Source: Macrostomum lignano
Lineage: Eukaryota
Assembly: GCA_002269645.1 (NCBI GenBank)
Contig: NIVC01001730.1
Coordinates: 180,924 to 244,923, forward strand
Reading direction: 5' to 3'
Length of the DNA stretch: 64,000 nucleotides
Shown: one piece after another, positions 8,001 through 50,506 of the stretch
Layout of the letters: the number at the start of each line of letters is the position of its first letter
Numbering within the stretch: position 1 is the stretch's first letter
Translations under genes and position numbers: made by a program
Notes under the pieces: model-generated
Database searches by the model: none
Told to the model about the DNA's origin: nothing
Seen by the model: only the letters and a program-made list of their open reading frames with translations

Positions 8001-11000
8001 ATTATCCCAGCCTGCCAGGTGTTCGAGCTTGATCGGAAACGGTGAGCTATTTATCTTTTTTTGAAATCTAAATCTGGAATGAGTCTTGTGTTATTCAATT
8101 TTCAATATCTCCGATCCCCACCGCTAATTCCCCCGACTCCAATCTCAACTCCCACCGCTACTTCCCCCGACTCCAATCTCAACTCCCACCGCTAATTCCC
8201 CGACCCCAATCTCCGATCCCCACCGCTAATTCCCCCCGACTCCAATCTCAACTCCCACCGCTACTTCCCCCGACTCCAATCTCAACTCCCACCGCTAATT
8301 CCCCGACCCCAATCTCCGATCCCCACCACTAATTCCCCCGACTCCAATCTCAACTCTCATCGCTAATTCCCGACTTTAATCTCCGATCCCAACCGCTAAT
8401 TCCCCGACCCCAATCTCCGATCCCAACCGCTAATTCCCGACTTTAATCTCCGATCCCAACCGCTAATTCCCCGACCCCAATCTCCGATCCCAACCGCTAA
8501 TTCCCGACTTTAATCTCCGATCCCAACCGCTAATTCCCCGACCCCAATCTCCGATCCCAACCGCTAATTCCCCGACCCCAATCTCCGATCCCAACCGCTA
8601 ATTCCCCGACCCCAATCTCTTACTAAATTAATAATTATAATCCGTCCTGCAGTATTCATGTGGTCCGCAAGATTGGTCAGGGCGCCTTCGGCACTGTGCT
8701 CTCCGGCCAATACACCTTCTCTGGAACCAGTATACACAACGTGGCGATTAAGATGCTCAAGCGTGAGTCTACTCGAGTCTGCTGTGATGCACTGGCTAGC
8801 CTGAGTCAGTCTATAGAGCTCACGGGGTGGGAATGTGTTGGCCACCAGGACTCAACAATAACATCTCCTACCATCCCCGATTCCCGCAAAGATTTCCTGA
8901 GGCCCACAAGCCCGCCAGACAGAGCCAGCATCTGCCTGCCTGTCTGTCTGTCTGGCGCTCTGAATGCTTTTAATTGGGACAGACGCGAGACGCGGCCCTA
9001 TTATGGAGTCTGGGAGGCTTCACCTTTTTAGAGTGCTCCACCCCACCTTTACAGCCACTTCCTCAACTTCCTCAGTTCCCAGTCCACCCATCATTGAGCT
9101 GGCTAGGAGCCCGTCTGCTTTTGGGTGCAAGCTTTACCACCTCGACTGGCAGAAATCTAAAATTATGCCTGGGGATATTGTTATTATATTATTCCCAAAT
9201 TGTATTATTGGAGCTCAGCTAGCTCCAGGTCTGAACCGCACAGTCAAGGACTTGAGAAGGGCTAGATTTTTCTTGAGTAGTTTTTAGACAGTCCCTTTGT
9301 TACCAGTTTTAGGCTTTGAGCCTGTTTTTTCAAATCAAATTATTCATTATTGGGCTATAGCAGACTTAGACCTGGGAATCAACTCAACAATTTGAGCACT
9401 TTGTGTGCTTATTGCTCGTGCTCAGCTCAATTGGCCAGCTGTTTTGGTGCCTGGGAGGGAAAAAGGTGCCTGGCCCGTCCAGGGCAGTCTTTGTAGCGTC
9501 TGTGTTTGCACTCTAGCCTATTGACATTCAGCGACAAAGACTCGTAGGCAATTATTGACTCTGTAGTGAGCAATCGGTCAAGAAAAATTCACCTGCTCCC
9601 TGTCTGAGCGCACCTGTGTAGCTTGCTAATTATTCCTTCGCCCCGTGTATCAAAATCACTTTGCAGGCGACTACTCGGAAGAGGAGATGATTGCGCTGGT
9701 CAAGGAGATAGAGATCATGAAAATGATGAGGTCGAACCCGCATCCGAACATTATTAAACTGGTTGGCGTCTGCACCAAAGGAGGTGAGTGAATGGTTTGC
9801 ACGATATGGGACTACGAGACTAGGGACTCGATATGGGACAGCAAGATTAGGGACTCGATATGGGACTACGAGACTAGGGACTCGATATGGGACAGCAAGA
9901 TTAGGGACTCGATATGGGACTACGAGACTAGGGACTCGATATGGGACAGCAAGATTAGGGACTCGATATGGGACTACGAGACTAGGGACTCGATATGGGA
10001 CTACGAGACCCATTGGACTTACGAGACCCTTGGGACTCGATATGGGACTACGAGACTCTTGGGACTCGATATGGGACTACCGACTACGAGACTCTTGGGA
10101 CTCGATATGGGACTACGAGACCCTTGGGACTCGATATGGGACTACGAGACCCTTAGGACTCGATATGTGACTACGAGACTCTTGGGACTCGATATGGGAC
10201 TACGAGACTAGGGTCTTGATATGGGACTACGAGACCCTATTTACTCTGTGTGGGACTACGAGACTCTAGAACTCCATATGGGACTATGACTTCAGGGACT
10301 CGATGGGATTCTATGGGCCAAAAGACAGAGTATGAGACTGTAAGACTCTAGGGACTCAATATGGAGATCTGGAGCTCGATTGGTGGCTATAAGACTCTTA
10401 GGATGTGTTGTCCTCTGTTTGTCTCTCCCGGCTTTTCCATTGCTATCTTGAGGCTGTATTTAAGCGTATGCTTCAACCTTTAATAGTATCTGGGTTAAGG
10501 TCCGCACCAAACAATCCCACGGGGGAAGCAAATGTGAGGCGACCCCAGCGTTATCAGAAAATGGGAACACAAATTTAAACGCACTCAATCCACTTGAGTG
10601 TTGGAGTGGAACGAAAGAAAATATATAAAATGCACTGGGCTGTTTGACAGATGGGAACCATTTTAATACTTAGCCCGCCTGTGCCCCTGTGTCCGACTAA
10701 TTTAGTGAGCTCTTTGTCTGAGCAAACCAAGTCTTATAGTATATTTCCACAGTATGGGAAGCAGCTGTTTAACTTAAAAACTTCCCCAAGGCGCCGGAGG
10801 GGGAGGCAGGTTTATTCCCCTCGGCACCACGCTGGGGAGGCGTGCTTCCCAGTGCTTTTGAAATCAACAACACATGATGGGCCTCTTTTATGAGCAGAAG
10901 GAGCTGGATTGAGTACAATGCACGGGTAAAGGGCGGAAGTAACTGTGACTCCTGAGCTAGCCAAATACCCGTACTTCGTCATCTGATTAGTGACTAGCAG

Positions 11001-13573
11001 GAATAAATCAACGAGATTCCCATCCCACGTATTCGAAGTTTAACTCCTTTAAGGCCGCCCTCGACCCTCCAGTGGCTTCATGTTCCCAATTATTATGAAA
11101 ATCTTGTTGTAGGCGTATTGCACGGATTTACACGAATTACACGGAAGTTCAGGGTCTACACGTACTGAATTTGTTAATAAAACAGTCAGAATTGCGAGTA
11201 GTTATAAAGATTGATTAAAACAAATATATTTTTTATAATGAACAAACAGCCTATGCCAGTGTTGCTCAAAAACAGATAAGAGATAAAAGGAGAGAAAAGA
11301 TGCAAGAGAAAATAAGAGGCGAGATGAGACAAACCTTGAGCGTACCGGATTGCTATTGTGAAGTTTCAAAGGACCCCCCTCCTCCCAAAGACAGAGAACA
11401 TTTTTTTTAAATCCCTGATCAATGTTTCATTTTGATTATTTTCATTTCGCGTTACACAAAACATCGTAAAATCGAAAACGGGTCTAAAATAAGAGGGGCT
11501 AAGGGAGTGTCCGGCGGCAACTAAATATGGCCATTCCTAGAGGCTACGAGTTTCCTATTCCAACTTCGAGCAATTTTCGTGGAGGCGCCTCCCCGTAACC
11601 TTCCCTTCCCGTCCCTTCCTGTCTCCCTTCCCAAGCTTCCAACTTAAGTGGCAAATTGGAAGGCCAGAGAGTGCAGTTTGTTTTGATTGCCCCAAACCCG
11701 GAGACGCCGAGGAGACTCTTAAGGGCTTTTTATATGAGCGCATCTTTATTAGGCCATCGGTTGAGTGAGCTGAGCAAAAATTTCCTTCTTTTGAGAAGAG
11801 CGATATGGGGGCCTAGGTTCAAGTTCGAATTCTCTTTATTCTTAATTTCGTTGCGTTCATAAACTCGACCTGCATTATAAAAAATATCAACTTTCTCTCC
11901 TTTTTTGTTCAGCAGAGCAGGCTGAGAAGCTGTAAAAAGGCGCTATTTTCTTTAAAGATTTCTGCCATTTCTCATGCACTGCCGCTCGGGAGGTTCAATT
12001 AACGGGCAATTTAGCTGCTGCTGCTGCTGCTGCTGCTACTGTAGTTTAGTTAAAATAGTTTCGGAGAGCCTCGAAGAGGCCCTGGATGGCGTTCCCAGGG
12101 TCCAAGCAGCCGGCGCTAGTACTGCTTCAGCTGGTGAGAGAGTTAGTGCTCGATTTGCCTCGGCTCCCCTCAAGGCCCGAGCACGGGAATGGCTTTTTAC
12201 AAGCGTGGGTACGGGGAGGGTGAGAGCGAGGGCTTGTGACCCCTATTGGCACTTAGGGGACCCGCTTCCTTGGTTTTTCAGCTTCAGGAGTTAGAGGGGA
12301 GTAGCGAAGTGATTGATTGATGAAGCAGGAGCTGGGAGGCTGCGCCTGATTTTCGGACACGGCCTGACTTAGCTGAATCAGCCGACGTTGTTGATTCAAT
12401 TGTCACGTGTTGTTAACAGTGCCTTAGCTATATATGGTTTCAACGTAATGCATTAGATTGAAGTTAATATTGATTATTTAATATTGTACAGGTGCAACTT
12501 AATATCACCAACATCAAGAGATACTTTTCAAGACACCAAACCTAGGGTTCGTTTCCGTATCGATATGCGGAAGCATTAACTCAGGCTCTTTTGCAAAAAA
12601 TTTGGGCCTAAAGCAGGGGTGAGGGGCCCGCAAAGCCTCTCTATCCGGCCCTAGGGTCTTTTGAAACTTCACAATAGCAATCCGGCCGGCTCAATGCTTA
12701 TGTCTCTTCTCAGGTGGTCATATGATTTGTGGAGCTATAAATTAACTGATTAAATTTTATAATTGTGCACAGGCAGGAGTGCTTTTTTGTTTAAAAATAA
12801 AAGTGCACATATTCGGAGAACAACCCCTATCCACCGCTCTCGCGCCCGCCCTCAGGCCCAGTGCTGCTTCTGACTGAGCTGGCACTTTACGGCAATTTAA
12901 GAGACTTCCTAAAACAGCGCCCTGTCACCTCGAAGCAGGCCGACTACATGAATGTGCTGCCAGACACTCGCGAGGTCTGCTTCACGCCCTGCGTGCGGCC
13001 TGTTCAGCTGCTGCACTTCAGCCGGGACGTGGCCAGGGCGCTGCAGTTCATGGCCGACATAAAGGTGCGTGAGCTGCTCTAGGGCATTCATGATTGGTGT
13101 ACAGTTGCGCAATGTGATGCTTGAGAGGATATGGATTGGAAAGATTATGAATTGGGAAGATTATGAATTGGGAAGGTTTAGAAATAGAAACTTTTGTTTG
13201 GGAATATTGATTCTAAGCAAATTGGTTTATTAAAAACATATATACTTGTATACAATTTGACTGTTATATATGGACAGTTCGTTAATCAGCGATTGTGATG
13301 CCTGTTTTCTGCACAGATTGTCCACAGGGACATTGCCGCGAGAAACATTCTGGTGGCCAACTCCGACGAGAAAGGCAAAATTGTTGCCAAGGTATCCGAC
13401 TTCGGGCTAACAAGGAACGTCTCCGACAAGGATTATTATCGAGTCATCACCGAGGTGAGCTCAGGATTTGTTTTGCTGGATAGATAGATAGATAGACAGA
13501 CAGATAGATAGATAGATAAATAGATAGATAGATAGATAGATAGATATATAGATAGATAGATAGACAGATAGAC

Positions 13574-17200: not shown

Positions 17201-18735
17201 TTTAAAAGCCCCGCTGCTGGCCTCAAAACTTGAAAAGTGCGCGAAAGCCTTTTCAGCTACTGCTGGCCTGGCTGAAGGGACAAGTGAAGGGGGGTATAAA
17301 TAACTCCCCGCCCCTTCCCTCCGGTCCTAAACAGGGAATCTGATCCTGCGTGCACTGCTGCACCCCCAAAAGCTGCTGTAAATTTGCTTGCTCCTTGCCC
17401 CATTTCAGCTCTTTGACCTTGCGTATGCACTTAGTAAAAATATTTGAATCCTATTCCGGTGCGTCACTGCAGAACGTTGGGGCTTGTTTTTCTAGTTTCA
17501 AAGTTTAACGAGTTTCTTCGCTTCTATTCACGTTCAATTCTCCTAAATCTGGTTTCCCCTACTCGAACCCTTTATGATCCCATCTCGAATCCATGAAACC
17601 CCTTCTCGAATCCATGAAATCCTATCTCCGAATCCATGAAACCCCATCTGGAATCCATGAAATCCCATCTCAGTATCCATGAAACCCCATCTCGAATCCA
17701 TGAAATCCCATCTCAGTATCCATGAAACCCCATCTCGAATCCATGAAATCCTATCTCCGAATTTATAAAATCCCATCTCAGTATCCATGAAACCCCATCT
17801 CGAATCCATGAAATCCTATCTCCGAATTTATAAAATCCCATCTCAGTATCCATGAAACCCCATCTCGAATCCATGAAATCCTATCTCCGAATTTATAAAA
17901 TCCCATCTCAGTATCCATGAAACCCCATCTCGAATCGATGAAATCCCATCTCAGAATGCATGAAATCCCCATCTCAGAATCCATGAAATCCCATCTCAGA
18001 ATCCATGAAACCCCATCTCGAATCGATGAAATCCCATCTCAGAATGCATGAAATCCCCATCTCAGAATCCATGAAATCCCATCTCAAAATCCATGAAGTC
18101 CCCTCTCAACTCTATGAAATCCAAATATACTATATCTCTAAGTTCCAATCTCAAATTCCATGAAATCCCTATCTCAAAATCCATGAAATCCCATCTCAAC
18201 TCCATAAAACCCCATCTCAAATCCATGTAATCCCATCTCAACTCCATAAATCCCCATCTCAAAATCCATGAAATCCCATCTCAACTCCATAAAACCCCAT
18301 CTCAAATCCATGTAATCCCAATCTCAAATCCCTGATATTCCCATCTCAAAAATCCGTAAAATCCTCTTGTCAAATCCTTGAAATCCTCTTATCGAATCCA
18401 TTAAAACTTGCCAACTCCACTGCTCAAAGCAGTTTAAAATCGTTCCATTCAACGCCTAGCAAGCCTCCTTGAATTGCAGCTGGGCCTACGGCATCCTCCT
18501 CTACGAGATATTCTCCAAAGGCGAGACCCCGTACCCCGGCGTGTCGCCGAACGGGGTGCTGCCGTACCTGGAGGCCGGCGGTGTCAATCCGCAGCCGGTG
18601 CTCGCCGGCGAGGGCCTCTACGGCCTCATGCGCGACTGCTGGGCCTGGGAGTCGCGCGATCGGCCCAGCTTCGAAAGCATCCTGGCCCGGCTGGACGGAC
18701 TCGAGAGGTGCTACGAGCACACCGACCTTCCGTGA
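2092..18735 (+). CDS. Ig-domain receptor tyrosine kinase, FGFR-like; 12 coding exons, about 915 aa
   Basis: Phase-consistent GT-AG exons: 2092-2119, 3550-3787, 4380-4982, 5493-5809, 6412-6654, 7624-8041, 8653-8762, 9667-9783, 12856-13064, 13317-13454, 14863-14933, 18480-18735 (2748 nt). Signal peptide [20 protein letters not shown]; three Ig-like domains (IVC..RWSKDG..GTYTC; RW..DTIGIYSC; LTLVC..NSGWYSC); TM segment [27 protein letters not shown] followed by QKRR; intact kinase motifs [51 protein letters not shown]. Confidence 0.92.
3815..4182. repeat. 31-bp minisatellite, RTK intron 2
   Basis: Unit GGGATCTGAACTCGCCCCGGGATCTGGCCTT. Confidence 0.95.
5096..5262. repeat. Degenerate 7-8-bp tandem repeat, RTK intron 3
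   Basis: CCCTTGT and CCCCTGGT units. Confidence 0.85.
5945..6282. repeat. 32-bp minisatellite, RTK intron 4
   Basis: Unit GAGTCTAATCTCAGGATCCCGATTCCCATTCT. Confidence 0.93.
8105..8620. repeat. 33-35-bp minisatellite, RTK intron 6
   Basis: Unit CCAATCTCCGATCCCAACCGCTAATTCCCCGACC. Confidence 0.95.
9803..10290. repeat. 27-bp minisatellite (54-bp dimer at its 5' end), RTK intron 8
   Basis: GGGACTCGATATGGGACTACGAGACTA alternating with GGGACTCGATATGGGACAGCAAGATTA. Confidence 0.95.
13479..14252. repeat. (GATA)n/(GACA)n microsatellite, about 770 bp, RTK intron 10
   Basis: Continuous GATA run with GACA interruptions. Confidence 0.98.
15016..15662. repeat. 33-bp minisatellite, RTK intron 11
   Basis: Unit GGTATCTCAAACCGTGAATCCCTCGAGTCAACC, about 19-20 copies. 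Confidence 0.97.
17560..18400. repeat. About 22-bp degenerate minisatellite, RTK intron 11
   Basis: Unit CATCTCGAATCCATGAAATCCC and variants. Confidence 0.93.
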
Positions 18736-18771: not shown

Positions 18772-20235
18772 CCAAGACAACTCGATATCCCATCTCAGAA
18801 AAACTCGATATCCCATCTCAGAAAAACTCGATATCCCATCTCAAGACAACTCGATATCCCATCCCCAAGACAACTCGATATCCCATCTCAGACAAACTCG
18901 AAATCCCATCTCAAAACAACTCGATATCCCATCTCAGACAAACTCGATATCCCATCTCAGAAAAACTCGATATCCCATCTCAGACAAACTCGATATCCCA
19001 TCTCAGACAAACTCGATATCCCATCTCAGACAAACTCGATATCCCATCTCAGACAAACTCGATATCCCATCCCTAGACAAACTCGATATCCCATCCCCTA
19101 GACAAACTCGATATCCCATCTCAGACAAACTCGATATCCCATCTCAGACAAACTCGATATCCCATCTCAGACAAACTCGATATCCCATCTCAAGACAACT
19201 CGATATCCCATCTCAAGACAACTCGATATCCCATCTCAGACAACTCGATATCCCATCTCAGACAACTTGATATCCCATCTCAGAAAAACTCGATATCCCA
19301 TCTCAGACAACTCGATATCCCATCTCAGAAAAACTCGATATCCCATCTCAGACAAACTCGATATCCCATCTCAAGACAACTCGATATCCCATCTCAGACA
19401 AACTCGATATCCCATCCCCTAGACAAACTCGATATCCCATCCCCTAGACAAACTCGATATCCCATCCCCTAGACAAACTCGATATCCCATCTCAGAAAAA
19501 CTCGATATCCCATCTCAGACAAACTGGATATCCCATCTCAAGACAACTCGATATCCCATCTCAGACAAAATCGATATCCCATCTCAGACAAACTCGATAT
19601 CCCATCTCAGACAAACTCGATATCCCATCTCAAGACAACTCGATATCCCATCTCAAGACAACTCGATATCCCATCTCAGACAACTCGATATCCCATCTCA
19701 GACAACTCGATATCCCATCTCAGAAAAACTCGATATCCCATCTCAGACAACTCGATATCCCATCTCAGAAAAACTCGATATCCCATCTCAGACAAACTCG
19801 ATATCCCATCCCCTAGACAAACTCGATATCCCATCTCAGACAAACTCGATATCCCATCTCAGACAAACTCGATATCCCATCTCAAGACAACTCGATATCC
19901 CATCTCAGACAAACTCGATATCCCATCCCCTAGACAAACTCGATATCCCATCCCTAGACAAACTCGATATCCCATCCCCTAGACAAACTCGATATCCCAT
20001 CTCAGACAAACTCGATATCCCATCTCAAGACAACTCGATATCCCATCTCAAGACAAATCGATATCCCATCTCAGACAACTCGATATCCCATCTCAGACAA
20101 CTCGATATCCCATCTCAGAAAAACTCGATATCCCATCTCAGACAACTCGATATCCCATCTCAGAAAAACTCGATATCCCATCTCAGACAAACTCGATATC
20201 CCATCTCAAGACAACTCTAGATCCCACTCGCAATA
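18772..20235. repeat. 22-24-bp minisatellite directly after the RTK stop codon
   Basis: Unit AACTCGATATCCCATCTCAGACA, about 60 copies. Confidence 0.97.
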
Positions 20236-22290
20236 CAACTCAAAATCCCATAATTTGATTCTGATTGCCAGTTCTCAACTTCCAGTTTCGCAGCGAGTGC
20301 AGTAACAAAGTTTGCCAACTTGCTAATGAGCACTAAAGCAACGCATCAGCTGTTCATTTATTATTTTTCTACGAACTTCATCACCATCATGTTTCGATTG
20401 ACCGTGCTGCAAAATCAATCTTGCTCTATTTTTTAGCTCGTAGACAATATTTTCCGCTTCACGCACGCATATGCTGTCCATACTACTTGCTATCGTCTGG
20501 CCAGGGAATCCCCCGCCACTTTATTACTTTTCGAACCCCTTTTTTTCCCTGTCTGTTGCCCCCACCCACAGCAAATTGGCATTACATTTAGCCAGCGCGC
20601 TCTGTACCTGTGTACATATGCACAAATAGTAGCTATTTTGCCATATATAAGCTTGATATTTTGGTGCTTGAACTCCCAATTTTGCCATCCCAAAGATGCA
20701 GCTGCGAGGCCCCAGTCCGATTTACAGATCAGTCTGCTATTTTTTTGTTTAAATTCATTTTTATTGTTTGCAAGTCTACAGGTGAAAGAGGCCCTAGCCG
20801 TAAAGTTTCCTAGTAAATGATTAATATTATTTTACCTATAATTAATATTATAATAATCTTTTCTAAGCGTCATCCCCGTGTGTTTTTAAAAAAGGCAGCC
20901 GTACAGGTACAGTGTACAATATGCAATGTACATAAGGTGCGTTTATATTCGCCTAGATACATATTTATGCATACAACATTTCGCATTTTTCAGCTCTGAA
21001 TGTCAATTTAACTGCAAACAGTCAATTATTGCTTGCAGTTGAAAAGCTGAAATTGCAAAATTTGTAAGGCAAGCAATTCATGCTCTATGATGAAGTGAAG
21101 CTCATGCCCCTCTGCTGTCATTTGTATTTTTTCGCTCATGTCCCGTAAACAAATGAGTGGCCTGCAAGGATCTTGTTTATTATATGCAGGTGCGTTTCCG
21201 CCGAAGCAGCTGATCTCCCATAATTATTCAATTCGTCTTGTACATGCAGCGGCCGTGCGCTGATCAACTAATATATTTGTGTTTATTTATTTTCTTCTAT
21301 ATTGTGCATTACCAGACCCTATGCATATGCTATTTTACAAGCCCTATATATGTATATATACTGTGTCATCTTGGGCCCCTGTGTGTGCGGCCTCGATTTT
21401 GCGTTACTCTCTAGTTGCAGCGTCCTTGTACTTTAGTTCTCCATGGCAACAGGACTCTGTTCCAATATGATCGAAGCCTGAAGCCCCCAGACCTGCCCGA
21501 TCGCATTTACTTGACTGGGTCTGCAGTTTTCTCCCGAAACTTCCCCTTGCGACTGCCCAGGCTCCGCCGCTACTGAGGGCTTCTGATGGATTGAATTTAT
21601 TGCAGTTTGATAAATATTAAGTTTATTGGCTCTGTTCTATTCGATACAGGAGTGTACTGATTTATGAACATGAAAATCAATCCATCACTAGCTTTCTTAT
21701 TAAATGCGGAGTAGGCCTGCATCTTTTTTGCCCCCCCCCCCACTCTCTCGTTCTGTTTTGGTGTTTTTTTGCTACCTTTGACTGAAATAAAATCATTGAA
21801 TTAAAAAAATCAAGGCGCCTTATACTTTTGTTTCGATGGATGGCAGATTGATAGAGGAGCGAAAGCAGACTAATAACAGAGCGAAAGGAGACTAATAGCG
21901 GAGCGAAAGCAGACTGATTGCAGAGACTAATAGCAGAGTGAAAAGCAAAAGTTAAAGCTCTATGTACGCTATTTGACGCATTATATACATTTGCGAACAC
22001 TTCGAGTCAAATGAACATTCTCCAAAACCCCGAGAGCTTGATCAACATCCTATACATATCAAGTCGAAAGATTTCTCAATCGTATATGGTCTGATTCAAT
22101 CTATATAACTACGAACGAGAGTATTACCCACTAGCCATAGACAGAAAACTTTTATTTGTGGATCAACTGCGTAAAAAGCATTGATAAGGTGACAGCAAAT
22201 ACAGAACCTACTATTGCAACTGAGCAAACGTCACTTAGCCAGATACGTCAACAGCATTGCTATATAACCAACATTGACAAGCCATCGCGA

Positions 22291-23469
22291 ATGGACTCCG
22301 ACAAGTGTTCCGAGAACGACGCCTCTGGTAAATCCGAAGAACCGATGCCGAGGAAAAGCAGCACAGTGTCGCTCGGTGTCGACGTTCCTCCTGATTGCAC
22401 CATTGACTTAGCGGAGTTGGTGAAGCGGCTGCTCAGCTTCCAGCCTCCCAACGATGACTACTCTGTGCACCCAGAGCTGACCGCACAGGACTGCCTCATC
22501 GTGTGCCACATGGCGATCAAGTACCTGAGCAGCAGCACCAGCGTCTGTGTACAAACGGACTCGCCCATCAACATTGTCGGCGACCTTCATGGCCAGTTCC
22601 ACGACCTGCTGCGCTTCTTTGACCAGCTGGGCCAGCCGCCTCAGGCCAAGTTCCTGTTTCTGGGCGACTACGTGAACAAGGGCAAGTTCTCTCTGGAGGT
22701 GATTGTTCTGCTGCTGAGCCTGATGCTGATGTACCCAGACTCGGTCGTGCTGCTCCGCGGCAGCTCCGAGTGCGCCAGCAAATGCAGTCACTACGGCTTC
22801 AAGGACGAGTTGATTGGCCGCTTCGGTGCCAACAGCGGCACCTCGGTGTTTGTCGGCTTCCTCCGCTGCTTCCAGTGGCTACCGCTGGCCGCCATCGTAG
22901 GCGGGAAGCTGCTGTGCTGCCACGGCGGAGTGTCGCCGAGCTTCGAGCTGGAGCCGTTCGCGTCCGGTCAGCCGGAGACCAACGCCGACTTGCTGAACAA
23001 TAAGATCGAGCGGCCGTTCGAGCTGCAACAGTTCGGCCTGGCGTGCGACCTGCTGTGCTCGGACCCGATGAAGTCGCCAGCTCGGGACAACTTCGAGGTC
23101 TCCGTGCCGGAGGGAGAGCGGCTGAAGCTCAACTGGGTGACGCGCGGACGCAGCTGCTCCTATCACTTCTCTAAGGAGGCTCTGTCGGAAGTGCTAAGGA
23201 TTCTAAACTTGTCTCTACTGATTCGGGGCAAGTGTCACGGCCCTGATGGCTTCAACGTGCTTTTGGACCGCCGCTGCGTCGCCCTAATCAGCTCCACCGA
23301 CTACCTGGGCCAGAAAAAGAACAACGCCTCCGTGCTGCAGATTGACAGCAGCAACATCAACACGAGGAAGCCGGGCGCGTTCTTCGTTCTGTGCCCAGTC
23401 AAAGCTGCGGCGAAGCACCTGCAGCATCTCTGGCAGAGTGCTGGCGAGATTGCCGGTGAAAAGAAATGA
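22291..23469 (+). CDS. Intronless PP1-like (PPP family) Ser/Thr phosphatase homolog, copy A, predicted pseudophosphatase, 392 aa
   Basis: ORF from the ATG at 22291. PPP motifs are recognisable but altered: GDLHG, GDYVNKG (canonical GDYVDRG), RGSSE (RGNHE), HGG, DLLCSDP (DLLWSDP), RGKC (RAHQ), SSTDY (SAPNY). Confidence 0.9.
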   Translation: MDSDKCSENDASGKSEEPMPRKSSTVSLGVDVPPDCTIDLAELVKRLLSFQPPNDDYSVHPELTAQDCLIVCHMAIKYLSSSTSVCVQTDSPINIVGDLHGQFHDLLRFFDQLGQPPQAKFLFLGDYVNKGKFSLEVIVLLLSLMLMYPDSVVLLRGSSECASKCSHYGFKDELIGRFGANSGTSVFVGFLRCFQWLPLAAIVGGKLLCCHGGVSPSFELEPFASGQPETNADLLNNKIERPFELQQFGLACDLLCSDPMKSPARDNFEVSVPEGERLKLNWVTRGRSCSYHFSKEALSEVLRILNLSLLIRGKCHGPDGFNVLLDRRCVALISSTDYLGQKKNNASVLQIDSSNINTRKPGAFFVLCPVKAAAKHLQHLWQSAGEIAGEKK

Positions 23470-24224
23470 AGCGACACTCCGTTATTGCATTTATTTCTGT
23501 TTGTATTGAAAAAGAAATTATTTTGAATTCGCATTACATTTTAAGTTACTGGAAGAGATTAAAGATTTACGCAACTCAATCACACGGTCCAAAAAAAGAC
23601 TAAGGATTCTGTTTTCAATGCATGGACTTGGTCATTGTTGTCGAAAAACTTTTCAGCTGGTTGAAAAAACTTGGTAACCTTAGTCTTTTGAGTTGTTCGA
23701 TTCAACGCCGCGAGAACGAGCGATCTCAGCTCAAAGTGAGGCCTAAAAGGCACAAAACACACCACCCACCCCAGCGCCGCAAACCCACCCCCACGGGTGG
23801 AGCCAAACAACCCCTCCTAGCCAATCGCAAACGCCGGTTAGCCCACGCCGTACAAGCCGACTAGGCAAACCGGTCATCATAGATAGTGTTCTGAATCAAT
23901 CTAATTCATTTCTGGTGTGAAAGCGTGATCCTCTACATGTATCTTAATTCGAGAAATTCTCTTAAGCTTAGTTGGCGACACCACCAAGTAGTCGGAGCTC
24001 TCCTTCAAATCAAGGACACGATTGGTACTTGGGTCTGAGTGGATTCAATAGCTAGCGGCTTGTCTTCGCGTTCGCGTTCGCCTTCGTGTATTCGCGTTCA
24101 TGCAGGTGAAGATGAATGTACATATGGCCAAGTTTTTTGCCATAGGGTACGAGCATGCTTCTCAACCAGAAACCTTGGGCAGGTAGTTTTCGGTATGCAG
24201 CAGCCTTCGGTGACTTATATTTGG

Positions 24225-24445
24225 CATGCAGCCTTCCTTCATGCAGCCTTCCTTCATGCAGCCTTCCTTCATGCAGCCTTCCTTCATGCAGCCTTCCTTC
24301 ATGCAGCCTTCCTTCATGCAGCCTTCCTTCATGCAGCCTTCCTTCATGCAGCCTTCCTTCATGCAGCCTTCCTTCATGCAACCAATTCCTTCATGCAGCC
24401 TTCCTTCATGCAGCCTTCCTTCATGCAGCCTTCCTTCATGCAACC
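24225..24445. repeat. 15-bp tandem repeat between the two phosphatase genes
   Basis: Unit CATGCAGCCTTCCTT, about 14 copies. Confidence 0.95.
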
Positions 24446-25289
24446 TTCGGCACTTACTTGTACATCTTTTTTTCTGTTTGTACATCAGCCTGGTGATTTT
24501 ATGGCATGATTGATGCCAGTACAGCACAAGAAGCCTTAGGGATCGAGCAGCATTGCAAAAAAAATGTAAGTTGGTTAATTTTAACTTTGGTCTTTTAGCT
24601 GCCGTCGGCATATTTTATGTAATCATGTCGTTTAGATGTAATGTGTTGACGTTGTTCAGCTAGGGCTTTCGACCTTTTACAGACTATATACTCGTAGCGA
24701 ATGTTAAACTGCGGACCAAGCCTCATCGGAGAAAATGGATTTACAGAATAGTCTGAAAAGCTGACAATGCAATTCTAGTTGTTGGGGGTCGGTTGGTCTC
24801 TACTTTAGATTTTCTGAGTACAGAGAATAAGTTCTTACGTAATGGTACTTTCCTAGTGCTGTTGATCGAACAACACATCAAAATGATAATGGCAATCAAG
24901 AAAACTCGAGCACATGCATAGAGTGTGGTAAATGAAAGTTTTTTCCGTTTATACTTATTTATTTTTTTGGTCTGAAGCAAAAGCAGAGGAATCGTCTCTT
25001 GGCCGAGGCGAAACCGAGGCCTGGATGCGAGTCCGAAGCTTATGCTTCAGACCAAAGACAAAAATAAACGGAAATAATATATTTATACCCCGTTTGGCCA
25101 TATTAACACTGTAAATTTAACCATAGAGAAATTTTGATTTGATGCCGTTCACAAAAACGACTGTGTTGGGTAGTTAAGAGTGAGTAGTTGTCTCTATCTC
25201 TACTAAACCTTCTCTGTGACGTTTTCGACTAATTTGCTGCATGAGTGATGTCGATAGCGTCAGCTTTGAATTACTTAGTCTTGCTGAAG

Positions 25290-25530
25290 TCGAAGCTGTC
25301 TAAAGTGACTTGCCATTGGCACCCGCAACCGACTATCCGAGTTTGAGCAAGCGCGATCTCAACTACGTTCTTAAGTGCTTTATCTTAGAGATCCGAAATT
25401 AACGTGGTGATTGCTATGGCGCTTCAGCGTTGAAGAATTACTTTCAGCATGCTGCAATACTACTTGTTCAAACACTGCGGAAAGCCATGGAGCCTCTGGA
25501 AGGACCGGGGAATTCAATGAGAGCCGACGT
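25290..25530 (+). mobile_element. Decayed Crypton-like (DUF3504 tyrosine-recombinase family) fragment
   Basis: DLNYVLKCFILEIRN*RGDCYGASALKNYF/MLQYYLFKHCGKPWSLWKD/EFNESR (one stop, small indels) resembles the recalled LNYWL..FVLE.R..DG..Y.P.TL....LQRYL....FKD.EF motif. Confidence 0.5.
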
Positions 25531-26131
25531 CCGAAGAGAAACTCTGCTCGGAAGATGTGATTGCGATTGGTAGTGATGTCCACGACAACTGGTGAGTTCT
25601 GTGATTTGGGGGGGGGGGTCAATGTGGAGTTGTGCGTGGTGATTGTCTACTTTGATTGAGTTGATCTGTTACGACCCATTGACTCACTTTTACCTGTCAA
25701 GCCAAAAAAACTGGTTAACAACTGCTCGCTTTTCTAAAACATTATAATCTGTTGTTTGTACATGTATTTCTCAAGGACCACTGTAGTAGTAGTGGTCCTT
25801 GGTATTTCTTTGAGTACTTTCTTGTGGCTCATTCGTTTGTCTTATTTATTTGGATCGTTTATTTGGCCGGGACAAATAAACGTCTTTTACATTGGACCAT
25901 AGACTCATTCGGCGCGGCCAAAAGGGGTCTAAAATTTACTCCGTAAATAGGTATATGCCAGATTGACGCTCCAGATCACGGAACCTTCACTCGCACTGGT
26001 GCAAATAAACGATCTGTGCACTTGCTTGCAACTGACGAAGGATTGGCCATAGACATCGGCACAAGTGGGGCATACCTAGAGCAACAAGCAACGGTGGCCA
26101 TTGGTTTTCGTTGAACTCATTCAGAACCAGC

Positions 26132-26723
26132 TATACCTTTTCAAGCTCGACTTTGGCAAAAGTGACTTCAATTTTGGCAGCCCATAGAAAAAGCATACGC
26201 CTGCCAGCAACATATCTATGGTCAACTGTGGTAGAATCGGTTAAAGCGTGCATTCAACTTTGGCAAAAGTGAGCGAATTTTGGCAACTCAACCGAACAAG
26301 ATGCCGAACGCGCGTATATCGCTGCAGGATCGAGAACGGCTGGTGCGCAGCTACCAAGAAGGAAGAGACTGGAGACGACTGGCGAAGGACCTCGACATAA
26401 AGAGAACCACGGCCGACACAATCACAGGTTTGTCACTGAAGATCGCGTTGCGCTGAAGCAAGGCGAGGAGCCGTGAGGCCAAAACTTACACCACCAATGT
26501 TAAATGCTGTGACTCGGTTTGTTGAAGAGAAGCCCACCATAACGGTGAGGGAGATGAAGTTTATTGTGTTGCCAAAATTCGCTCACTTTTGCCAAAGTTG
26601 AATGCACGCTTTAACCGATTCTACCACAGTTGACCATAGACATGTTGCTGGCAGGCGTATGCTTTTTCTATGGGCTGCCAAAATTGAAGTCACTTTTGCC
26701 AAAGTCGAGCTTGAAAAGGTATA
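26132..26723 (+). mobile_element. Internally deleted Tc1/mariner-type DNA transposon with 156-bp TIRs and flanking TA
   Basis: 26132-26287 is the near-perfect reverse complement of 26568-26723. Each TIR carries CTTTGGCAAAAGTGA twice. The interior encodes the transposase N-terminal HTH (MPNARISLQDRERLVRSYQEGRDWRRLAKDLDIKRTTADTI; RPKLTPPMLNAVTRFVEEKPTITVREM) but no DDE domain. Confidence 0.88.
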
Positions 26724-26761
26724 TTAGCTGAATATCAGAAGTCAGTCCAATTATCACAAAG

Positions 26762-27943
26762 ATGGCAGCGGCAGACGCACAGGCTTGCACGCCTGGTTGC
26801 GCCAAGATGCAGAGCGCCGAGAGTTCCGCCACTCAGGCACCAATGCTAGAAAATAGAAGCAACGCCTCTGCTGTTGTCATGGACCATGCCAACTTAGCGG
26901 AGCTGGTGAAGCGGCTGCTCAGCTTCCAGGCGCCCAACGATGATTACTCGGTGCACCCAGAGCTGACCGCACAGGACTGCCTCATCGTGTGCCACATGGC
27001 GATCAAGTACCTGAGCAGCAGCACCAGCGTCTGTGTACAAACGGACTCGCCCATCAACATTGTCGGCGACCTTCACGGCCAGTTCCACGACCTGTTGCGC
27101 TTCTTTGACCAGCTGGGCCAGCCGCCTCAGGCCAAGTTCCTGTTTCTGGGCGACTACGTGAACAAGGGCAAGTTCTCTCTGGAGGTGATTGTTCTGCTGC
27201 TGAGCCTGATGCTGATGTACCCAGACTCGGTCGTGCTGCTCCGCGGCAGCTCCGAGTGCGCCAGCAAATGCAGTCACTACGGCTTCAAGGACGAGTTGAT
27301 TGGCCGCTTCGGTGCCAACAGCGGCACCTCGGTGCTTGTCGGCTTCCTCCGCTGCTTCCAGTGGCTACCGCTGGCCGCCATCGTAGGCGGGAAGCTGCTG
27401 TGCTGCCACGGCGGAGTGTCGCCGAGCTTCGAGCTAGAGCCGTTCGCGTCCGGTCAGCTGGAGAGCAACGCCGACTTGCTGAACAATAAGATCGAGCGGC
27501 CGTTCGAGCTGGAGCAGTTCGGCCTGGCGTGCGACCTGCTGTGCTCGGACCCGATGAAGTCGCCTGCTCGGGACAACTTCGAGGTCTCCGTGCCGGAGGG
27601 AGAGCGGCTGAAGCTCAACTGGGTGACGGGCGGAGGCAGCTGCTCCTATCACTTTTCTAAGGAGGCTCTGTGCTCCTCACTGAGATCTGTGAATGCGGCT
27701 CTGCTGGTCCGTGGACGTGAGATCGCTAACGAAGGCTTCGCTGTGCGGCACGACCGTCTCTGCATCACCCTGTGCAGTGCGCCAGGGTACCACGGCACGC
27801 GCGGTAACAAGGGAGCCGCGCTGCAATTCGAAGACAGAGAAGTTAATTTAGACAGACCCGGATCGTTTTTCGTTTTGACACCCAGATCTGAGCTGCTGTC
27901 GGAAAAGAGCAGAAGCTTTCTGTATTGGCATTCCACCGCCTAG
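26762..27943 (+). CDS. Intronless PP1-like phosphatase homolog, copy B, predicted pseudophosphatase, 393 aa
   Basis: Same motifs as copy A across the core; C-terminal RGREIANEGF (canonical RAHQVVEDGY) and SAPGYHG (SAPNYCG). Confidence 0.9.
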   Translation: MAAADAQACTPGCAKMQSAESSATQAPMLENRSNASAVVMDHANLAELVKRLLSFQAPNDDYSVHPELTAQDCLIVCHMAIKYLSSSTSVCVQTDSPINIVGDLHGQFHDLLRFFDQLGQPPQAKFLFLGDYVNKGKFSLEVIVLLLSLMLMYPDSVVLLRGSSECASKCSHYGFKDELIGRFGANSGTSVLVGFLRCFQWLPLAAIVGGKLLCCHGGVSPSFELEPFASGQLESNADLLNNKIERPFELEQFGLACDLLCSDPMKSPARDNFEVSVPEGERLKLNWVTGGGSCSYHFSKEALCSSLRSVNAALLVRGREIANEGFAVRHDRLCITLCSAPGYHGTRGNKGAALQFEDREVNLDRPGSFFVLTPRSELLSEKSRSFLYWHSTA

Positions 27944-31960: not shown

Positions 31961-34900
31961 ATGAGTGACTTATATGCAGGAATTACATTGAGTCCAATAT
32001 TTTGGGTAAGTCGCGATTGAAATCGAACAAGCAAACCTTAATTAACCGCTAATTTTGTCCATTTTTACTTCAATCGATACTATTTCTCATAATTGACGCA
32101 TGTATAAATTTTCCTTTACATTTAAAGCAAATTTAATGATTTCTCTACTTTACAAGCATAATTTGTAGTTTTATCTTATGTAATCGTTTTTAGTCATTAA
32201 AAAACATTGTCAGATTAATGGTCATTAGTAAAGTTAGTAAAATTAGTAAAACGAGTAAAATATGATAAAAAAGAAACGATTTTTTATAGCAATATCTTGC
32301 AGTTTTGAAAATTTCATTATAAAATACTCATCAGTTCACTATTCATATTAAATATTTTACAGGCATCTTTAATTGGTGGTCTACTAGCGTTTCTACTTTT
32401 GTGTCTGATTATCTGTTTGGTATGCCAAAAGTGCATATTAAATCGGTAAGAACCTTGGGCCATATCCATGTTCTTGATATCCATTTACTCAGTATTTCAA
32501 ATCATAGGACTTTGGTACTTTTCATTGTCTTAAGCTATCACTATGTCATAGAAGCTTACTGATGTGATTCAGTAAGCTCAATACAATTGCCTTTCTTGTC
32601 TGCTCCAATAATCTACCCACCCTCCCCTGTCTACCCACCATCCCCACCCTCCCCTGTCTGCAGTGTCTACCCAACCTCCCGTGTCTACCCACCCTCCCCA
32701 CCCTCCCGTGTCTACCTACCCTCCTCTGTCTCCAGTGTCTACCCATCCTCCCCAACCTCCCGTGTCTACCGACCCTCCCCTGTCTGCAGTGTCTACCCAC
32801 CCTCCCCACCCTCCCGTGTCTACCGACCCTCCCCTGTCTGCAGTGTCTACCCACCCTCCCCACCCTCCCGTGTCTACCCACCCTCCCCACCCTCCCGTGT
32901 CTACCCACCCTCCCCACCCTCCCGTGTCTACCCACCCTCCCCACCCTCCCGTGTCTACCCACCCTCCCCTGTCCGCAGTGTCTACCCACCCTCCCCACCC
33001 TCCCGTGTCTACCCACCCTCCCCACCCTCCCGTGTCTACCCACCCTCCCCACCCTCCCGTGTCTACCCACCCTCCCCACCCTCCCGTGTCTACCCACCCT
33101 CCCCACCCTCCCGTGTCTACCCACCCTCCCCACCCTCCCGTGTCTACCCACCCTCCCCACCCTCCCGTGTCTACCCACCCTCCCCACCCTCCCGTGTCTA
33201 CCCACCCTCCCCTGTCTACAGTGTCTACCCATCCTATCCACCCTCCCGTGTCTACCCACCCTCCCCTGTCTACAGTGTCTACCCATCCTATCCACCCTCC
33301 CGTGTCTACCCACCCTACCCACCCTCCCCTGTCTACCCAACCTCCCCTGTCTACCCACCCTCTCCTGCTTACCCACCCTACCCGTCTACCCACCCCCTGT
33401 CTTCCCATGTCTCTCTTATCTACCCAGCTTCCCCACTTTCTAGCTTCCTGTTCATCGCCCCCAAATCAATCAATTTTCAATTTCCCCCCACCCGCCAGCC
33501 GGAGCGGCTACTCGCAGCTGGAGAACGGGTCCAGCAGCCTGGACACGTCCGGCACCCTGGAGATCATGAACGCCAGCATCAAGGAGGAGAGCGAACAGAT
33601 CAGGCATTCGGCATTTCTAATGCTGCAATTTCACTTGAGAAATGGCCGCCAATGGATAGTGAAGGACCACCTTAGCCAGCTGGGCACCAGAAGATCCTGG
33701 AACTGGTTCAGCGTCACTTCAGCTGGCGGTGATCGTTTCTGCCTGCTGCTGCTCAGCCCCTACGTGTCCGACCCGGGGCTCTGCCCGCTGCCTCTCAAAC
33801 AGAAGAGCTTCGCCTGCGTCAGGCAGTGGCTGGAAGGACTGCGGGTGACTGCATGGGCGGCACCCTCATTTGGGAGTGACACCCTCCCTGAGGAATTGAG
33901 TGACTGCACCCTCCCTGAGGAATTGAGTGACTGCACCCTCCCTGAGGAATTGAGTGACTGCACCCTCCCTGAGGAATTGAGTGACTGCACCCTCCCTGAG
34001 GAATTGAGTGACTGCACCCTCCCTGAGGAATTGAGTGACTGCACCCTCCCTGAGGAATTGAGTGACTGCACCCTCCCTGAGGAATTGAGTGACTGCACCC
34101 TCCCTGAGGAATTGAGTGACTGCACCCTCCCTGAGGAATTGAGTGACTGCACCCTCCCTGAGGAATTGAGTGACTCCCTCCCTGAGGAATTGAGTGACAC
34201 CCTCTCTGAGGAATTGAGTGACACCCTCCCTGAGGAATTGAGTGACTCCCTCCCTGAGGAATTGAGTGACTCCCTCTCTGAGGAATTGAGTGACACCCTC
34301 CCTGAGGAATTGAGTGACTGCACCCTCCCTGAGGAATTGAGTGACTGCACCCTCCCTGAGGAATTGAGTGACTGCACCCTCCCTGAGGAATTGAGTGACT
34401 GCACCCTCCCTGAGGAATTGAGTGACACCCTCCCTGAGGAATTGAGTGACACCCTCCCTGAGGAATTGAGTGACACCCTCACTCTTCTGCTCACCAAAAT
34501 CTATTATTCGGTTTCCTTGCAGCACGAATGCCTGCTGCTTGGCCAGCTTGACCTGATTGAGAAGCACTCCCGATTCCTGCACATTGTGCCCTTCTGTCCG
34601 AAAGGCAGCGTGCGAGATTTCATCTGCCAGGTATGGAGTAACCTGCTCTCCGCAGACACCAGACACCCCGCCCTTCCTCCGCAGACAAACCCGCTGTACC
34701 CGCACCAGACACCCCGCCCTTCCTCCGCAGACAAACCCGCTGTACCCGCACCAGACACCCCGCCCTTCCTCCGCAGACAAACCCGCTGTACCCGCACCAG
34801 ACACCCCGCTTTCCCTCCGCAGACAAACCCGCTGTACCCGCACCAGACCCTTGCCCTTCCTCCGCAGACAAACCCGCTGTACCCGCACCAGACACCCCGC

Positions 34901-37610
34901 CCTCCCTCCGCAGACAAACCCACTGTACCCGCACCAGACACCCCGCCCTTCCTCCGCAGACAAACCCGCTGTACCCGCACCAGACACCCCGCTTTCCCTC
35001 CGCAGACAAACCCGCTGTACCCGCACCAGACACCCCGCCCTTCCTCCGCAGACAAACCCGCTGTACCCGCACCAGACACCCCGCCCTCCCTCCGCAGACA
35101 AACCCACTGTACCCGCACCAGACACCCCGCCCTTCCTCCGCAGACAAACCCGCTGTACCCTCACCAGACACCCCGCCCTTCCTCCGCAGACAACCCGCTG
35201 TACCCGCACCAGACACCCCGCCCTCCCTTCGCAGACAAACCCGCTGTACCCGCACAGGACACCCCGCCCTTCCTCCGCAGACAAACCCGCTGTACCCGCA
35301 CCAGACACCCCGCTTTCCCTCCGCAGACAAACCCGCTGTACCCGCACCAGACACCCCGCCCTTCCTCCGCAGACAAACCCGCTGTACCCGCACCAGACAC
35401 CCCGCCCTCCCTCCGCAGACAAACCCGCTGTACCCGCACCAGACACCCCGCCCTTCCTCCGCAGACAAACCCGCTGTACCCGCACCAGACACCCCGCCCT
35501 TCCTCCGCAGACAAACCCGCTGTACCCGCACCAGACACCCCGCCCTCCCTCCGCAGACAAACCCACTGTACCCGCACCAGACACCCCGCCCTTCCTCCGC
35601 AGACAAACCCGCTGTACCCTCACCAGACACCCCGCCCTCCCTCCGCAGACAACCCGCTGTACCCGCACCAGACACCCCGCCCTCCCTTCGCAGACAAACC
35701 CGCTGTACCCGCACAGGACACCCCGTCCTCCCTCCGCAGACAAACCCGCTGTACCCGCACCAGACACCCCGCTTTTCCTCCGCAGACAAACCCGCTGTAC
35801 TCGCACCAGACACCCCGCCCTTCCTCCGCAGACAAACCCACTGTACCCGCACCAGACACCCCGCCCTTCCTCCGCAGACAAACCCACTGTACCCGCACCA
35901 GACACCCCGCTTTCCCTCCGCAGACAAACCCGCTGTACCCGCACCAGACGAAGGTGGCCCGTCGCCGCCATCCAGTTCCGCTCGGAAAGCTGCACGCCTG
36001 GTCCGGCCGAGTTCTGCGGGCCCTGCTGCACCTGCACAGCTGCGGGCTGCGGCCTCACGGCTTTGTACACGCTGGCAACGTGTTGCTAAGCAACGAAGGC
36101 GTCCAGCTGGGCGGCTTGGAGAGTGTCCTGACGGGTCAGGTGCCGCCGCGATGGCCGGAGCTGCGCCGACTCCTGCCAGCAGGCGGCCGAAGGCGCCACC
36201 TCACGGATTCAGTTGGGCTCGGACACCTGCTGTTCGAGATGGCAACCGGCTTCGAGCTGACAGCGACAGCCCCAACAGCGGTGGAGTTTCAGGCGAGTGT
36301 CCGAGGTGTCCGACTGGATAGTGAGGTTTCCGGCTGGATAGTGAGGTGTCCGACTGGATAGTGAGGTGTCCGACTGGATAGTGAGGTGTCCGACTGGGTA
36401 GTCAGGTTTCCGGCTGGATAGTGAGGTGTCCGATTGGGTAGTGAGGTGTCCGATTGGGTAGTGAGGTGTCCGACTGGATAGTGAGGTGTCCGACTGGATA
36501 GTGAGGTGTCCGACTGGATAGTGAGGTGTCCGACTGGATAGTGAGGTGTCCGATTGGGTAGTGAGGTGTCCGACTGGATAGTGAGGTGTCCGACTGGATA
36601 GTGAGGTGTCCGACTGGATAGTGAGGTGTCCGACTGGATAGTGAGGTGTCCGACTGGATAGTGAGGTGTCCGACTGGATAGTGAGGTGTCCGACTGGATA
36701 GTGAGGTTTCCGGCTGGATAGTGAGGTTTCCGGCTGGATAGTGAGGTTTCCGGCTGGATAGTGAGGTTTCCGGCTGGATAGTGAGGTTTCCGGCTGGATA
36801 GTGAGGTTTCCGGCTGGATAGTGAGGTTTCCGGCTGGATAGTGAGGTTTCCGGCTGGATAGTGAGGTTTCCGGCTGAATAGTGAGGTTTCCGGCTGGATA
36901 GTAAGGTTTCCGGCTGGATAGAGGTGTCCAACTGAATAGAGGCTTAATCTCAGAATGAGGCACATTTTGCTGGTGCTCACAGAGTGCATTCGACCGCCTT
37001 TCAGATCCTCGCAGCCAAGGGCCGAAAATACCGGCCACTGTTGGATGTCTTGAACTTCATCTTCGAGCGCCTGCCGTTCGGCAGCGTACCGGAGCTCGGT
37101 GCCATCGCTGATCACGCCTTCTTCGCCGGCTGCATGGTCGAGTTCCCGGTGGCCGAGACGGCCGCTGCCTCCGATTCCACCGCCTCGACAGCGGTGGTCG
37201 CTTCCTTTCTCAAGCGGGTGCGCAAGCGCCTGCCAGCAGGGGTTCGCAGCGGCGGCGTCGCGACAGCGGCCGCGGAAAGTCCGCGGCAGCCTCGGGACGT
37301 CCGGGCGCAGCCTCAGCCTCCGACTGCGCGAGCACCACCGCGGGCGCCTGAGCCTCCTCCGCCTCCTCCGCAAGCGCCTCCGCCCCCGCCACCTCCAGCG
37401 CCTCCCCCGCCGCCTCCAGCGCCTCCCCCGCCGCCTCCAGCGCCTCCCCCGCCGCCTCCAGCGCCTCCCCCGCCGGGGCCGCCGCCGCCACCGTCGCGCG
37501 CACCGGAGCGATCGACAGGTCGCGGCGCACTTCTGTCCGACATTCGCCGCGGCGCCAAATTGAAGAAGGTCGCCAATCTGACCAACGATAGAAGCGCGCC
37601 TCGATTGTGA
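31961..37610 (+). CDS. Slob: Slowpoke-binding protein/PXK-like pseudokinase with N-terminal TM anchor, polyproline and C-terminal WH2; 6 exons, about 518 aa
   Basis: Phase-consistent exons: 31961-32005, 32363-32445, 33499-33844, 34523-34630, 35924-36292 (GC donor CAG|GCGAGT, inferred), 37005-37610 (1557 nt). Slob/PXK-like segments LGTRRSWNWF, IVPFCPKGSVRDFI, GRVLRALLHL..HGFVHAGNVLL, GLESVLTG, DSVGLGHLLFEMATGFEL, LDVLNFIF; WH2 RGALLSDIRRGAKLKKV. Family assignment is from recalled motifs, not a search. Confidence 0.82.
32610..33395. repeat. 27-bp C-rich minisatellite, Slob intron 2
   Basis: Unit CCACCCTCCCCACCCTCCCGTGTCTAC. Confidence 0.95.
33870..34480. repeat. 27/24-bp minisatellite, Slob intron 3
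   Basis: Unit GTGACTGCACCCTCCCTGAGGAATTGA. Confidence 0.96.
34645..35947. repeat. 46-bp minisatellite spanning the Slob intron 4/exon 5 junction
   Basis: Unit CCAGACACCCCGCCCTTCCTCCGCAGACAAACCCGCTGTACCCGCA, about 28 copies. Confidence 0.96.
36296..36925. repeat. 20-bp minisatellite, Slob intron 5
   Basis: GTGAGGTGTCCGACTGGATA grading to GTGAGGTTTCCGGCTGGATA, about 31 copies. Confidence 0.96.

Positions 37611-41209: not shown

Positions 41210-50506
<9,297 letters not shown>

Follow-up and report, generated by a model that had tools for sequence, protein, structure and literature searches.

Two predicted PP1-like pseudophosphatase genes of Macrostomum lignano that share a homogenised catalytic core

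A stretch of 64,000 nucleotides of the Macrostomum lignano genome (contig NIVC01001730.1, positions 180,924 to 244,923 of the forward strand, hereafter the window) contains two neighbouring genes, copy A and copy B, that encode PP1-like proteins of the PPP phosphatase family in which much of the catalytic centre has been replaced. The analyses described here favour the reading that A and B are old, intronless and lineage-specific genes that descended from an active ancestor and are now probably maintained by selection as predicted non-catalytic binding proteins, with their shared core under gene conversion.

Fold, catalytic residues and relatives

Both open reading frames (ORFs) are uninterrupted and full length (392 and 393 aa), and both are PPP-like, as an earlier note made from the letters of this DNA had described them; the frame of copy A is open further upstream, from TTG 22156. 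The Pfam Metallophos domain (PF00149, cut-off 21.5 bits) was matched by copy A with an E value of 1.6e-25 (91 bits) and by copy B with an E value of 1.8e-23 (84 bits). The best matches of both proteins among solved structures were PP1 alpha/gamma (E ~1e-47), with PP2A and calcineurin at ~1e-38 per domain. An AlphaFold2 model of copy A, built from an input alignment of 37 sequences, gave a confident PP1 fold (mean predicted local distance difference test score (pLDDT) 85.6, core above 90, predicted template modelling score (pTM) 0.85), and all of the top 50 PDB neighbours of this model in Foldseek were PP1, PPZ1 or Glc7, with a target-normalised TM score of 0.93-0.94 and a root-mean-square deviation of ~2.6 Å. 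Because PP1 heads the solved-structure matches and the model neighbours are all PP1, PPZ1 or Glc7, the label "PP1-like", which had been given to the pair in the earlier note, is right for the fold and the nearest subfamily. Membership of A and B in the PPP family is by descent and fold; the catalytic signature GDxHG-GDxVDRG-GNHE is not intact, GDLHG being its only intact part.

Residues were called in human PP1 alpha numbering from an alignment of A and B with human PP1 alpha, four M. lignano paralogs and four other PPPs; the human PP1 alpha sequence used agrees with the PDB alignment. The residue calls of the earlier note were all reproduced in this alignment. Both copies keep D64, H66, D92, H173 and Y272, both carry D95N, R96K, N124S, H125S and W206C, position 248 is H248K in A (AAG) and H248R in B (CGT), and R221 is lost in copy B (R221G) and present in A. 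The R221G change is private to the window's copy B, R221 being kept in six of the seven known copies. D208 is also retained in both proteins, Q249 is lost in both, and copy A has further changes in the strand leading to the SAPNY loop (T265A, F267I, A269S and P270T). The motifs of A and B read GDLHG, GDYVNKG, GSSE, CHGG and LLCSDP (Table 1).

In PP1 catalysis H125 is the general acid and D95 is its partner. H125 is marked as the proton donor in PMC2175518. The M1 metal of PP1 is held by D64, H66 and D92, and the M2 metal by D92, N124, H173 and H248 (PMC10066265), in agreement with the earlier note, which gave N124 and H248 as ligands of the second metal. With these ligand roles, M1 keeps three of its three ligands and M2 two of its four, so the description of the metal site as "half-dismantled" is apt.

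The distribution of the losses was compared with that of conserved positions in general. Nine active-looking PPPs are invariant at 57 alignment columns, of which 44 are retained by A and 46 by B. The losses are enriched in the active-site shell, both in A (7 of 15 shell columns against 6 of 42, P = 0.016) and in B (8 of 15 against 3 of 42, P = 4e-4). This alignment-based pattern is not one of chance, and it indicates that the fold is kept and the catalytic centre selectively rebuilt.

The closest database proteins to A and B are all from M. lignano. Four active-looking paralogs of the same clade, with 45-56% identity to A and B, are P0004 (BOX15_Mlig022352g3), P0005 (BOX15_Mlig013621g2), P0007 and P0008. 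They resemble A and B in three insertions (one following HGG-SP, one following SDP and one preceding the last strand), in a C-terminal [FLY]W motif and in a degenerate RVxF pocket, but differ from them in that all four retain all 13 catalytic positions, which argues that the dead state was derived from an active ancestor. P0005 is intronless like A and B, and its protein is identical at three loci (L004-L006:6001-7146); P0004 (L003:6001-9775) is interrupted at codon 290 by one GT-AG intron of 2.7 kb. The two dead copies also have the sequence KSPAR, which makes up a complete CDK-type S-P-x-R site, in a clade-specific insertion beside the SDP loop (23074-23085 and 27560-27571). This site is without counterpart in the active paralogs and recalls the inhibitory TPPR site in the PP1 tail.

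The 13 catalytic positions were surveyed in the 147 nearest 50%-identity cluster representatives. The canonical residue was found at all 13 positions in 130 of these, and most of the remainder were truncated; real catalytic substitutions occurred in no more than three proteins of full length (one each from Heterodera, Aspergillus and a metagenome), none of which had the A/B pattern. The Asn-His pair of GNHE was kept in 144 of the 147, the exceptions listed being P0159 (N124 kept, H125R), P0182 (N124K, H125Q) and P0193, a truncated protein in which both residues are present. The survey and the literature are both consistent with the statement that dead members are uncommon in the PPP family.

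It was considered whether A and B might still be enzymes that hydrolyse some phosphoester, possibly a non-protein one, either with one metal bound at M1 or with a reconstructed site made of S124/S125 and K/R248. Such an activity would fit the retention of the M1 ligands D64, H66 and D92 together with H173, D208, K96, R221 and Y272, the presence of the GDxVxKG pattern in active Alph/ApaH-like PPPs as well, and the concentration of the changes at the active site, which is not a random spread. However, the H125-D95 general-acid dyad is gone on both sides, and the GNHE Asn-His pair, kept by nearly all of the nearest representatives, has been lost, which makes residual or altered activity unlikely. 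PP1 activity, moreover, needs both metals, and N124 and H248 hold M2 (PMC10066265). We therefore regard continued catalysis as very unlikely.

Another idea, put forward in the earlier note for RVxF-type regulators, is that A and B are decoys which titrate PP1 regulators, either RVxF-type subunits or SDS22, inhibitor-2 and inhibitor-3. The overall PP1 fold would agree with such a role, the RVxF-channel positions I169L, L243, R261, V/I264 and F293 are kept, and SDS22 prefers metal-deficient PP1 (PMC10066265). A and B are, as judged from their sequences, not PP1 orthologs: identity to PP1 is ~33%, the RVxF pocket is not conserved, and a search for the PP1-type N-terminal domain STPPase_N (PF16891) with a limit as lax as E <= 5 found no match in any of A, B, P0004 and P0005, whereas a mite PP1 (P0014) does match. 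The pocket, moreover, is altered by D242S/A, F257V, L289N/E and C291G, and because these four residues are replaced throughout the Macrostomum clade, active paralogs included, the RVxF version of the idea is weak. Conservation is also lacking at the SILK site and in the acidic groove, and SDS22 recognises the loss of M1, not that of M2 (PMC10066265). A decoy function of this kind appears highly improbable.

Conversion tract and copy-number variation

The two genes could be aligned by blastn only over a tract of 780 nt with 97.8% identity (Table 1). No alignment was obtained for the initial 38-43 codons, for the final ~95 codons or for any of the flanking DNA. The number of synonymous substitutions per site (dS) between A and B was 0.02-0.06 in the shared tract and ~1.6, which is saturated, in the C-terminal third, where the corresponding nonsynonymous value (dN) was 0.69. 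In this third, the distance between A and B is as large as that of either copy from P0004 or P0005, and the rate of evolution of the C-terminal parts is at least double that in the active paralogs (dN 0.45-0.69 vs 0.25). Because a near-identical tract lies beside a saturated C-terminal region, these comparisons indicate that A and B are old paralogs whose core has been homogenised by gene conversion or unequal crossing-over. The two are a tandem pair in the sense of neighbouring genes, as had been noted earlier, but not in the sense of a simple tandem duplicate. A chimeric origin of the C-termini, P0005-like in A and P0004-like in B, was also considered and is unsupported, as A and B are placed together, though weakly (68%), by neighbour-joining, and the distances are equivocal.

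The tract of copy A contains GDLHG, GDYVNKG, GSSE, CHGG, LLCSDP and R221. Every dead motif lies within the tract with the exception of position 248, and the loss of these motifs may therefore have occurred once and then spread. In both of the diverged C-termini H248 has given way to a basic residue, encoded differently in the two copies (AAG and CGT), which weakly suggests a long history without H248, since both C-termini are saturated, or selection for a positive charge at this position.

The window shows ~97-98% identity in alignable DNA to two public M. lignano loci and is identical to neither, and so represents a third haplotype or homeolog of a highly redundant genome. Copy A is 100% identical to a gene in the sister locus L002, and copy B is 97% identical to PAA48670.1 / BOX15_Mlig008226g1. 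Locus L002 carries A and B. Locus L001 carries three copies (2225-3400, 6105-7298 and 10001-11182), namely A, a hybrid with the N-terminus of B and the C-terminus of A, and B; the database protein P0002 (A0A1I8HH36) is the opposite hybrid, with the N-terminus of A and the core and C-terminus of B. By their sequences, the L001 triplet and P0002 look like reciprocal products of an unequal crossover inside the 780-bp tract, and copy number at the locus accordingly varies.

Table 1. Positions of the two genes, their motifs and the shared tract within the window
Feature	Position	Strand	Remarks
Copy A, predicted PP1-like pseudophosphatase gene, intronless, 392 aa plus stop	22291..23469	+	ORF from first ATG
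Copy B, predicted PP1-like pseudophosphatase gene, intronless, 393 aa plus stop	26762..27943	+	ORF
Gene-conversion or crossover tract, copy A (aa 39-298)	22406..23185	+	only stretch of A aligning to B by blastn; dS 0.056
Matching conversion tract, copy B	26892..27671	+	blastn
GDYVNKG (D92 kept; D95N, R96K)	A 22663..22683, B 27149-27169	+	
GSSE replacing GNHE (N124S AAC>AGC, H125S CAC>TCC)	A 22759..22770, B 27245-27256	+	
LLCSDP (W206C)	A 23050..23067, B 27536-27553	+	
Copy A IRGKC, H248K (AAG) and Q249C	23221..23235	+	outside conversion tract
Copy B VRGRE, H248R (CGT) and Q249E	27707..27721	+	outside conversion tract
Copy B TGGGS, two CGC>GGC changes, one removing R221	27626..27640	+	other six copies TRGRS
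Intergenic spacer	23470..26761		with 15-bp tandem repeat; no DNA similarity to other copy's flanks

Selection, expression and proposed function

The seven copies found over three loci (the window, L001 and L002) are all open over their full length (~392 codons) and carry the same dead motifs, and the sole indel among them is an in-frame loss of 3 nt. When each segregating change was counted once, the shared core of the seven copies contained 12 synonymous and 11 nonsynonymous changes (P = 0.003), and the whole genes contained 16 and 14, respectively, corresponding to a dN/dS ratio (omega) of ~0.27 (binomial P = 4.6e-4). The active paralog P0005 had 15 synonymous changes and no nonsynonymous change over its three loci (Fisher P = 0.0014 against the dead genes). 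These counts indicate that purifying selection on A and B is relaxed but real, and because the ORFs are intact and the synonymous excess is significant, A and B are not plain pseudogenes.

The Mlig_3_7 annotation in GenBank consists solely of transcripts derived from RNA-seq and de novo transcriptome assembly (PMC5730564). Models from this annotation cover both A and B of L002 as well as B and the hybrid copy of L001, and transcription is thus indirectly supported by transcript-based models at the sister loci. The gene IDs Mlig008226, Mlig009324 and Mlig008619 were not mentioned in the M. lignano literature full texts and supplements that were searched. The earlier note had called A and B "selected pseudo-enzymes". 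The intact copies, the in-frame indel and the omega value bear out this prediction from sequence, as opposed to decaying pseudogenes.

A number of observations nonetheless weigh against the favoured reading. Constraint on A and B is far weaker than that on P0005, the coding divergence of copy B between haplotypes (1.8%) is not below the intergenic divergence (1.5%), and the window's copy B carries the extra radical changes R294G and R221G. The mutation counts are few, and because gene conversion can spread or erase variants, the counted events are not strictly independent. The transcript models stem from the sister loci and are not copy-specific. In searches of 5.8 billion proteins and 1.84 billion representatives, no ortholog in another species was found that is closer than the M. 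lignano paralogs. D95N and R96K are also present in active Alph/ApaH-type enzymes, so these two changes alone are not diagnostic of death. Finally, the copy A change H248K is one that made PP1 unpurifiable, and the lack of M2 may destabilise a protein that has no compensating changes.

Some of these observations would be expected if A and B were young non-functional relics, in which the core died recently and was copied by conversion, and in which the ORFs are still open as too little time has passed. The relaxed constraint (omega ~0.27 against ~0 for P0005), the R294G and R221G changes, the haplotype divergence of copy B, the variable copy number that results from unequal crossing-over and the absence of a detected ortholog from the searches above all agree with such relics. 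On the other hand, the seven intact copies with a lone in-frame indel, the significant synonymous excess, the retention of the structural invariants and the transcript-based gene models at the sister loci do not, nor does the basic replacement of H248 through different codons in two synonymously saturated C-termini. We consider it unlikely that the genes are relics.

In the favoured reading, that of selected binding proteins, A and B descend from an active enzyme similar to P0004 and P0005. The general-acid dyad (H125S, D95N), two of the four M2 ligands (N124S, H248K/R) and W206 have been lost. Still present are the three M1 ligands, H173, the basic character of position 96, R221 in all but one of the seven copies, Y272 and the PP1 fold. 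Conversion and unequal crossing-over have kept the catalytic core near-identical, and the N- and C-terminal parts have diverged beyond recognition at the DNA level. Because the general acid is gone and M2 has half of its ligands, canonical two-metal hydrolysis is presumably lost, and phosphoserine and phosphothreonine would no longer be hydrolysed by A and B. The two proteins would instead act by binding. Most likely they would retain the phospho-substrates or partners on which the active paralogs act, and in this way compete with these paralogs or buffer them. Lysine or arginine at position 248 could occupy or neutralise the vacant M2 site, and the intact M1 site, K96, R221 in most copies, Y272 and whatever substrate grooves the clade possesses would remain for binding.

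A role as a phosphopeptide trap is plausible by analogy with engineered PP1. In PP1 H66K, a lysine fills M1 and the protein is folded, metal-deficient and a substrate trap, whereas PP1 H248K could not be purified (PMC10066265). Copy A resembles both of these mutants in that a lysine replaces a metal-ligand histidine, and it represents a natural H248K. Since PP1 H248K could not be purified, natural A and B must either carry compensating changes or be unstable. The engineered protein has a single change, in contrast to the natural proteins, which add N124S, H125S, D95N, W206C and Q249C/E, and it is these changes that may compensate.

A very divergent PP1-like gene of M. lignano, RNA815_7008, is testis-specific, and its knock-down deforms sperm (Arbore 2015, PMC4490696). 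The possibility that RNA815_7008 is one of the genes described here was rejected; its N-terminal sequence matches neither A, B nor the paralogs, and it is therefore a different gene. By analogy, however, it suggests that divergent PP1-like genes of M. lignano may work in sperm. A more specific version of the binding function would combine these analogies, with the pair as a natural single-metal, substrate-trap form of PP1, comparable to engineered H66K, in which K/R248 fills M2 and phosphoproteins are bound but left unhydrolysed. Kept uniform by concerted evolution, the pair would antagonise its active and possibly sperm-specific paralogs in a dosage-sensitive manner. This version is offered tentatively and is unlikely. 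If it were true, the pair would be the first animal pseudophosphatase of the PPP family with a defined reader mechanism, and it would reveal which compensating changes let the PPP fold survive without M2.

Surroundings of the pair and known PPP pseudophosphatases

The spacer between A and B contains about 15 copies of the 15-bp tandem repeat CATGCAGCCTTCCTT (24225-24448), which yields spurious ORFs in several frames. Upstream of copy A are two satellite arrays, at 17577-18405 (22-bp units, ~38 copies) and at 18773-20251 (23-bp units, ~63 copies), both of which recur at the sister loci. Elsewhere in the window, tandem repeats of 20, 27 and 46 bp were found at 32616-36939 inside a long ORF (32663-36361), at a place where the sister locus annotates a WH2-domain gene. 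A GC-rich, low-complexity region at 45353-49303 has open frames of ~1300 codons on either strand (forward 1288 aa, reverse 1316 aa) and only repeat-type Pfam matches; a repetitive structural gene and a non-coding repeat are both conceivable. An ORF at 49340-50473 on the reverse strand contains an N-terminal part and a HIPK-like kinase domain (HIPK2, E 9e-112) and is probably the first exon of a larger gene. Synteny of a kinase gene between the A/B pair and P0004 was considered and rejected, because the HIPK-like kinase of the window is unrelated to the kinase next to P0004. A partial match to glycosyl hydrolase family 99 (E 5e-15) was found in an ORF at 60178-60825 on the reverse strand, which is probably one exon.

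Among known PPP proteins, PfPPP8 is a PPP-type pseudophosphatase of the Plasmodium basal complex whose inactivity has been measured and which has been proposed to be a phosphoprotein trap; in 2023 it was called the first experimentally characterised PPP pseudophosphatase (PMC10317984). PfPPP8 and its apicomplexan homologs share with A and B the PPP fold, substitutions in GDxVDRG that include D95N, and inactivity, which in A and B is predicted. In PfPPP8, however, the metal ligand D92 is changed (GNLINRG) and substitutions are reported in that core motif only, whereas A and B keep D92 and have lost the GNHE motif and H248. PfPPP8 is also a large multidomain protein and is unrelated to A and B beyond the PPP fold, the nearest relatives of A and B being M. 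lignano PP1-like genes.

Arabidopsis PP7L ("inactive PP7") is likewise a PPP member without catalytic-centre residues, and PP7-inactive homologs are among the distant matches of A and B. It differs from them in being PP7/PPEF-related, in having a plant nuclear function that works through the partners MAIN and MAIL1, and in forming no tandem pair and showing no conversion. The kinetoplastid kPPPs and a PP2B-like triplet are predicted PPP pseudophosphatases with substituted catalytic residues, like A and B (PMC2175518), but the kPPPs belong to protist lineages and have no close relation to the A/B clade. The Alphs share with A and B the pattern of the second motif, a neutral residue for the second Asp and Lys for Arg, but they are a PPP group with substitutions in this motif only and are not described as pseudophosphatases (PMC2175518). 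Although GDYVNKG fits the Alph/ApaH-like pattern, A and B do not belong to that group, as GNHE is lost and their closest relatives are eukaryotic PP1-like proteins. No animal pseudophosphatase of the PPP family was found described in the literature that was searched.

In conclusion, PPP-type pseudophosphatases are few but already known, and the A/B pair is a further independent case, in an animal. What is unusual in this pair is that M2 and the acid dyad have been removed with M1 kept, and that the genes show an unusual genomic behaviour. The UniProt name of the A and B proteins, "protein-serine/threonine phosphatase", would be corrected by the favoured reading. The importance of the pair is modest because the genes are lineage-specific. 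Nevertheless, the locus provides a clean example of concerted evolution confined to one segment of a gene, and it is a compact natural experiment, in which the closest paralogs are active, the losses fall on precisely the M2 ligands and the acid dyad, and the H248K change that destabilises human PP1 is present in one copy. The folding and binding of A and B could show how a bimetal phosphatase becomes a binding module.

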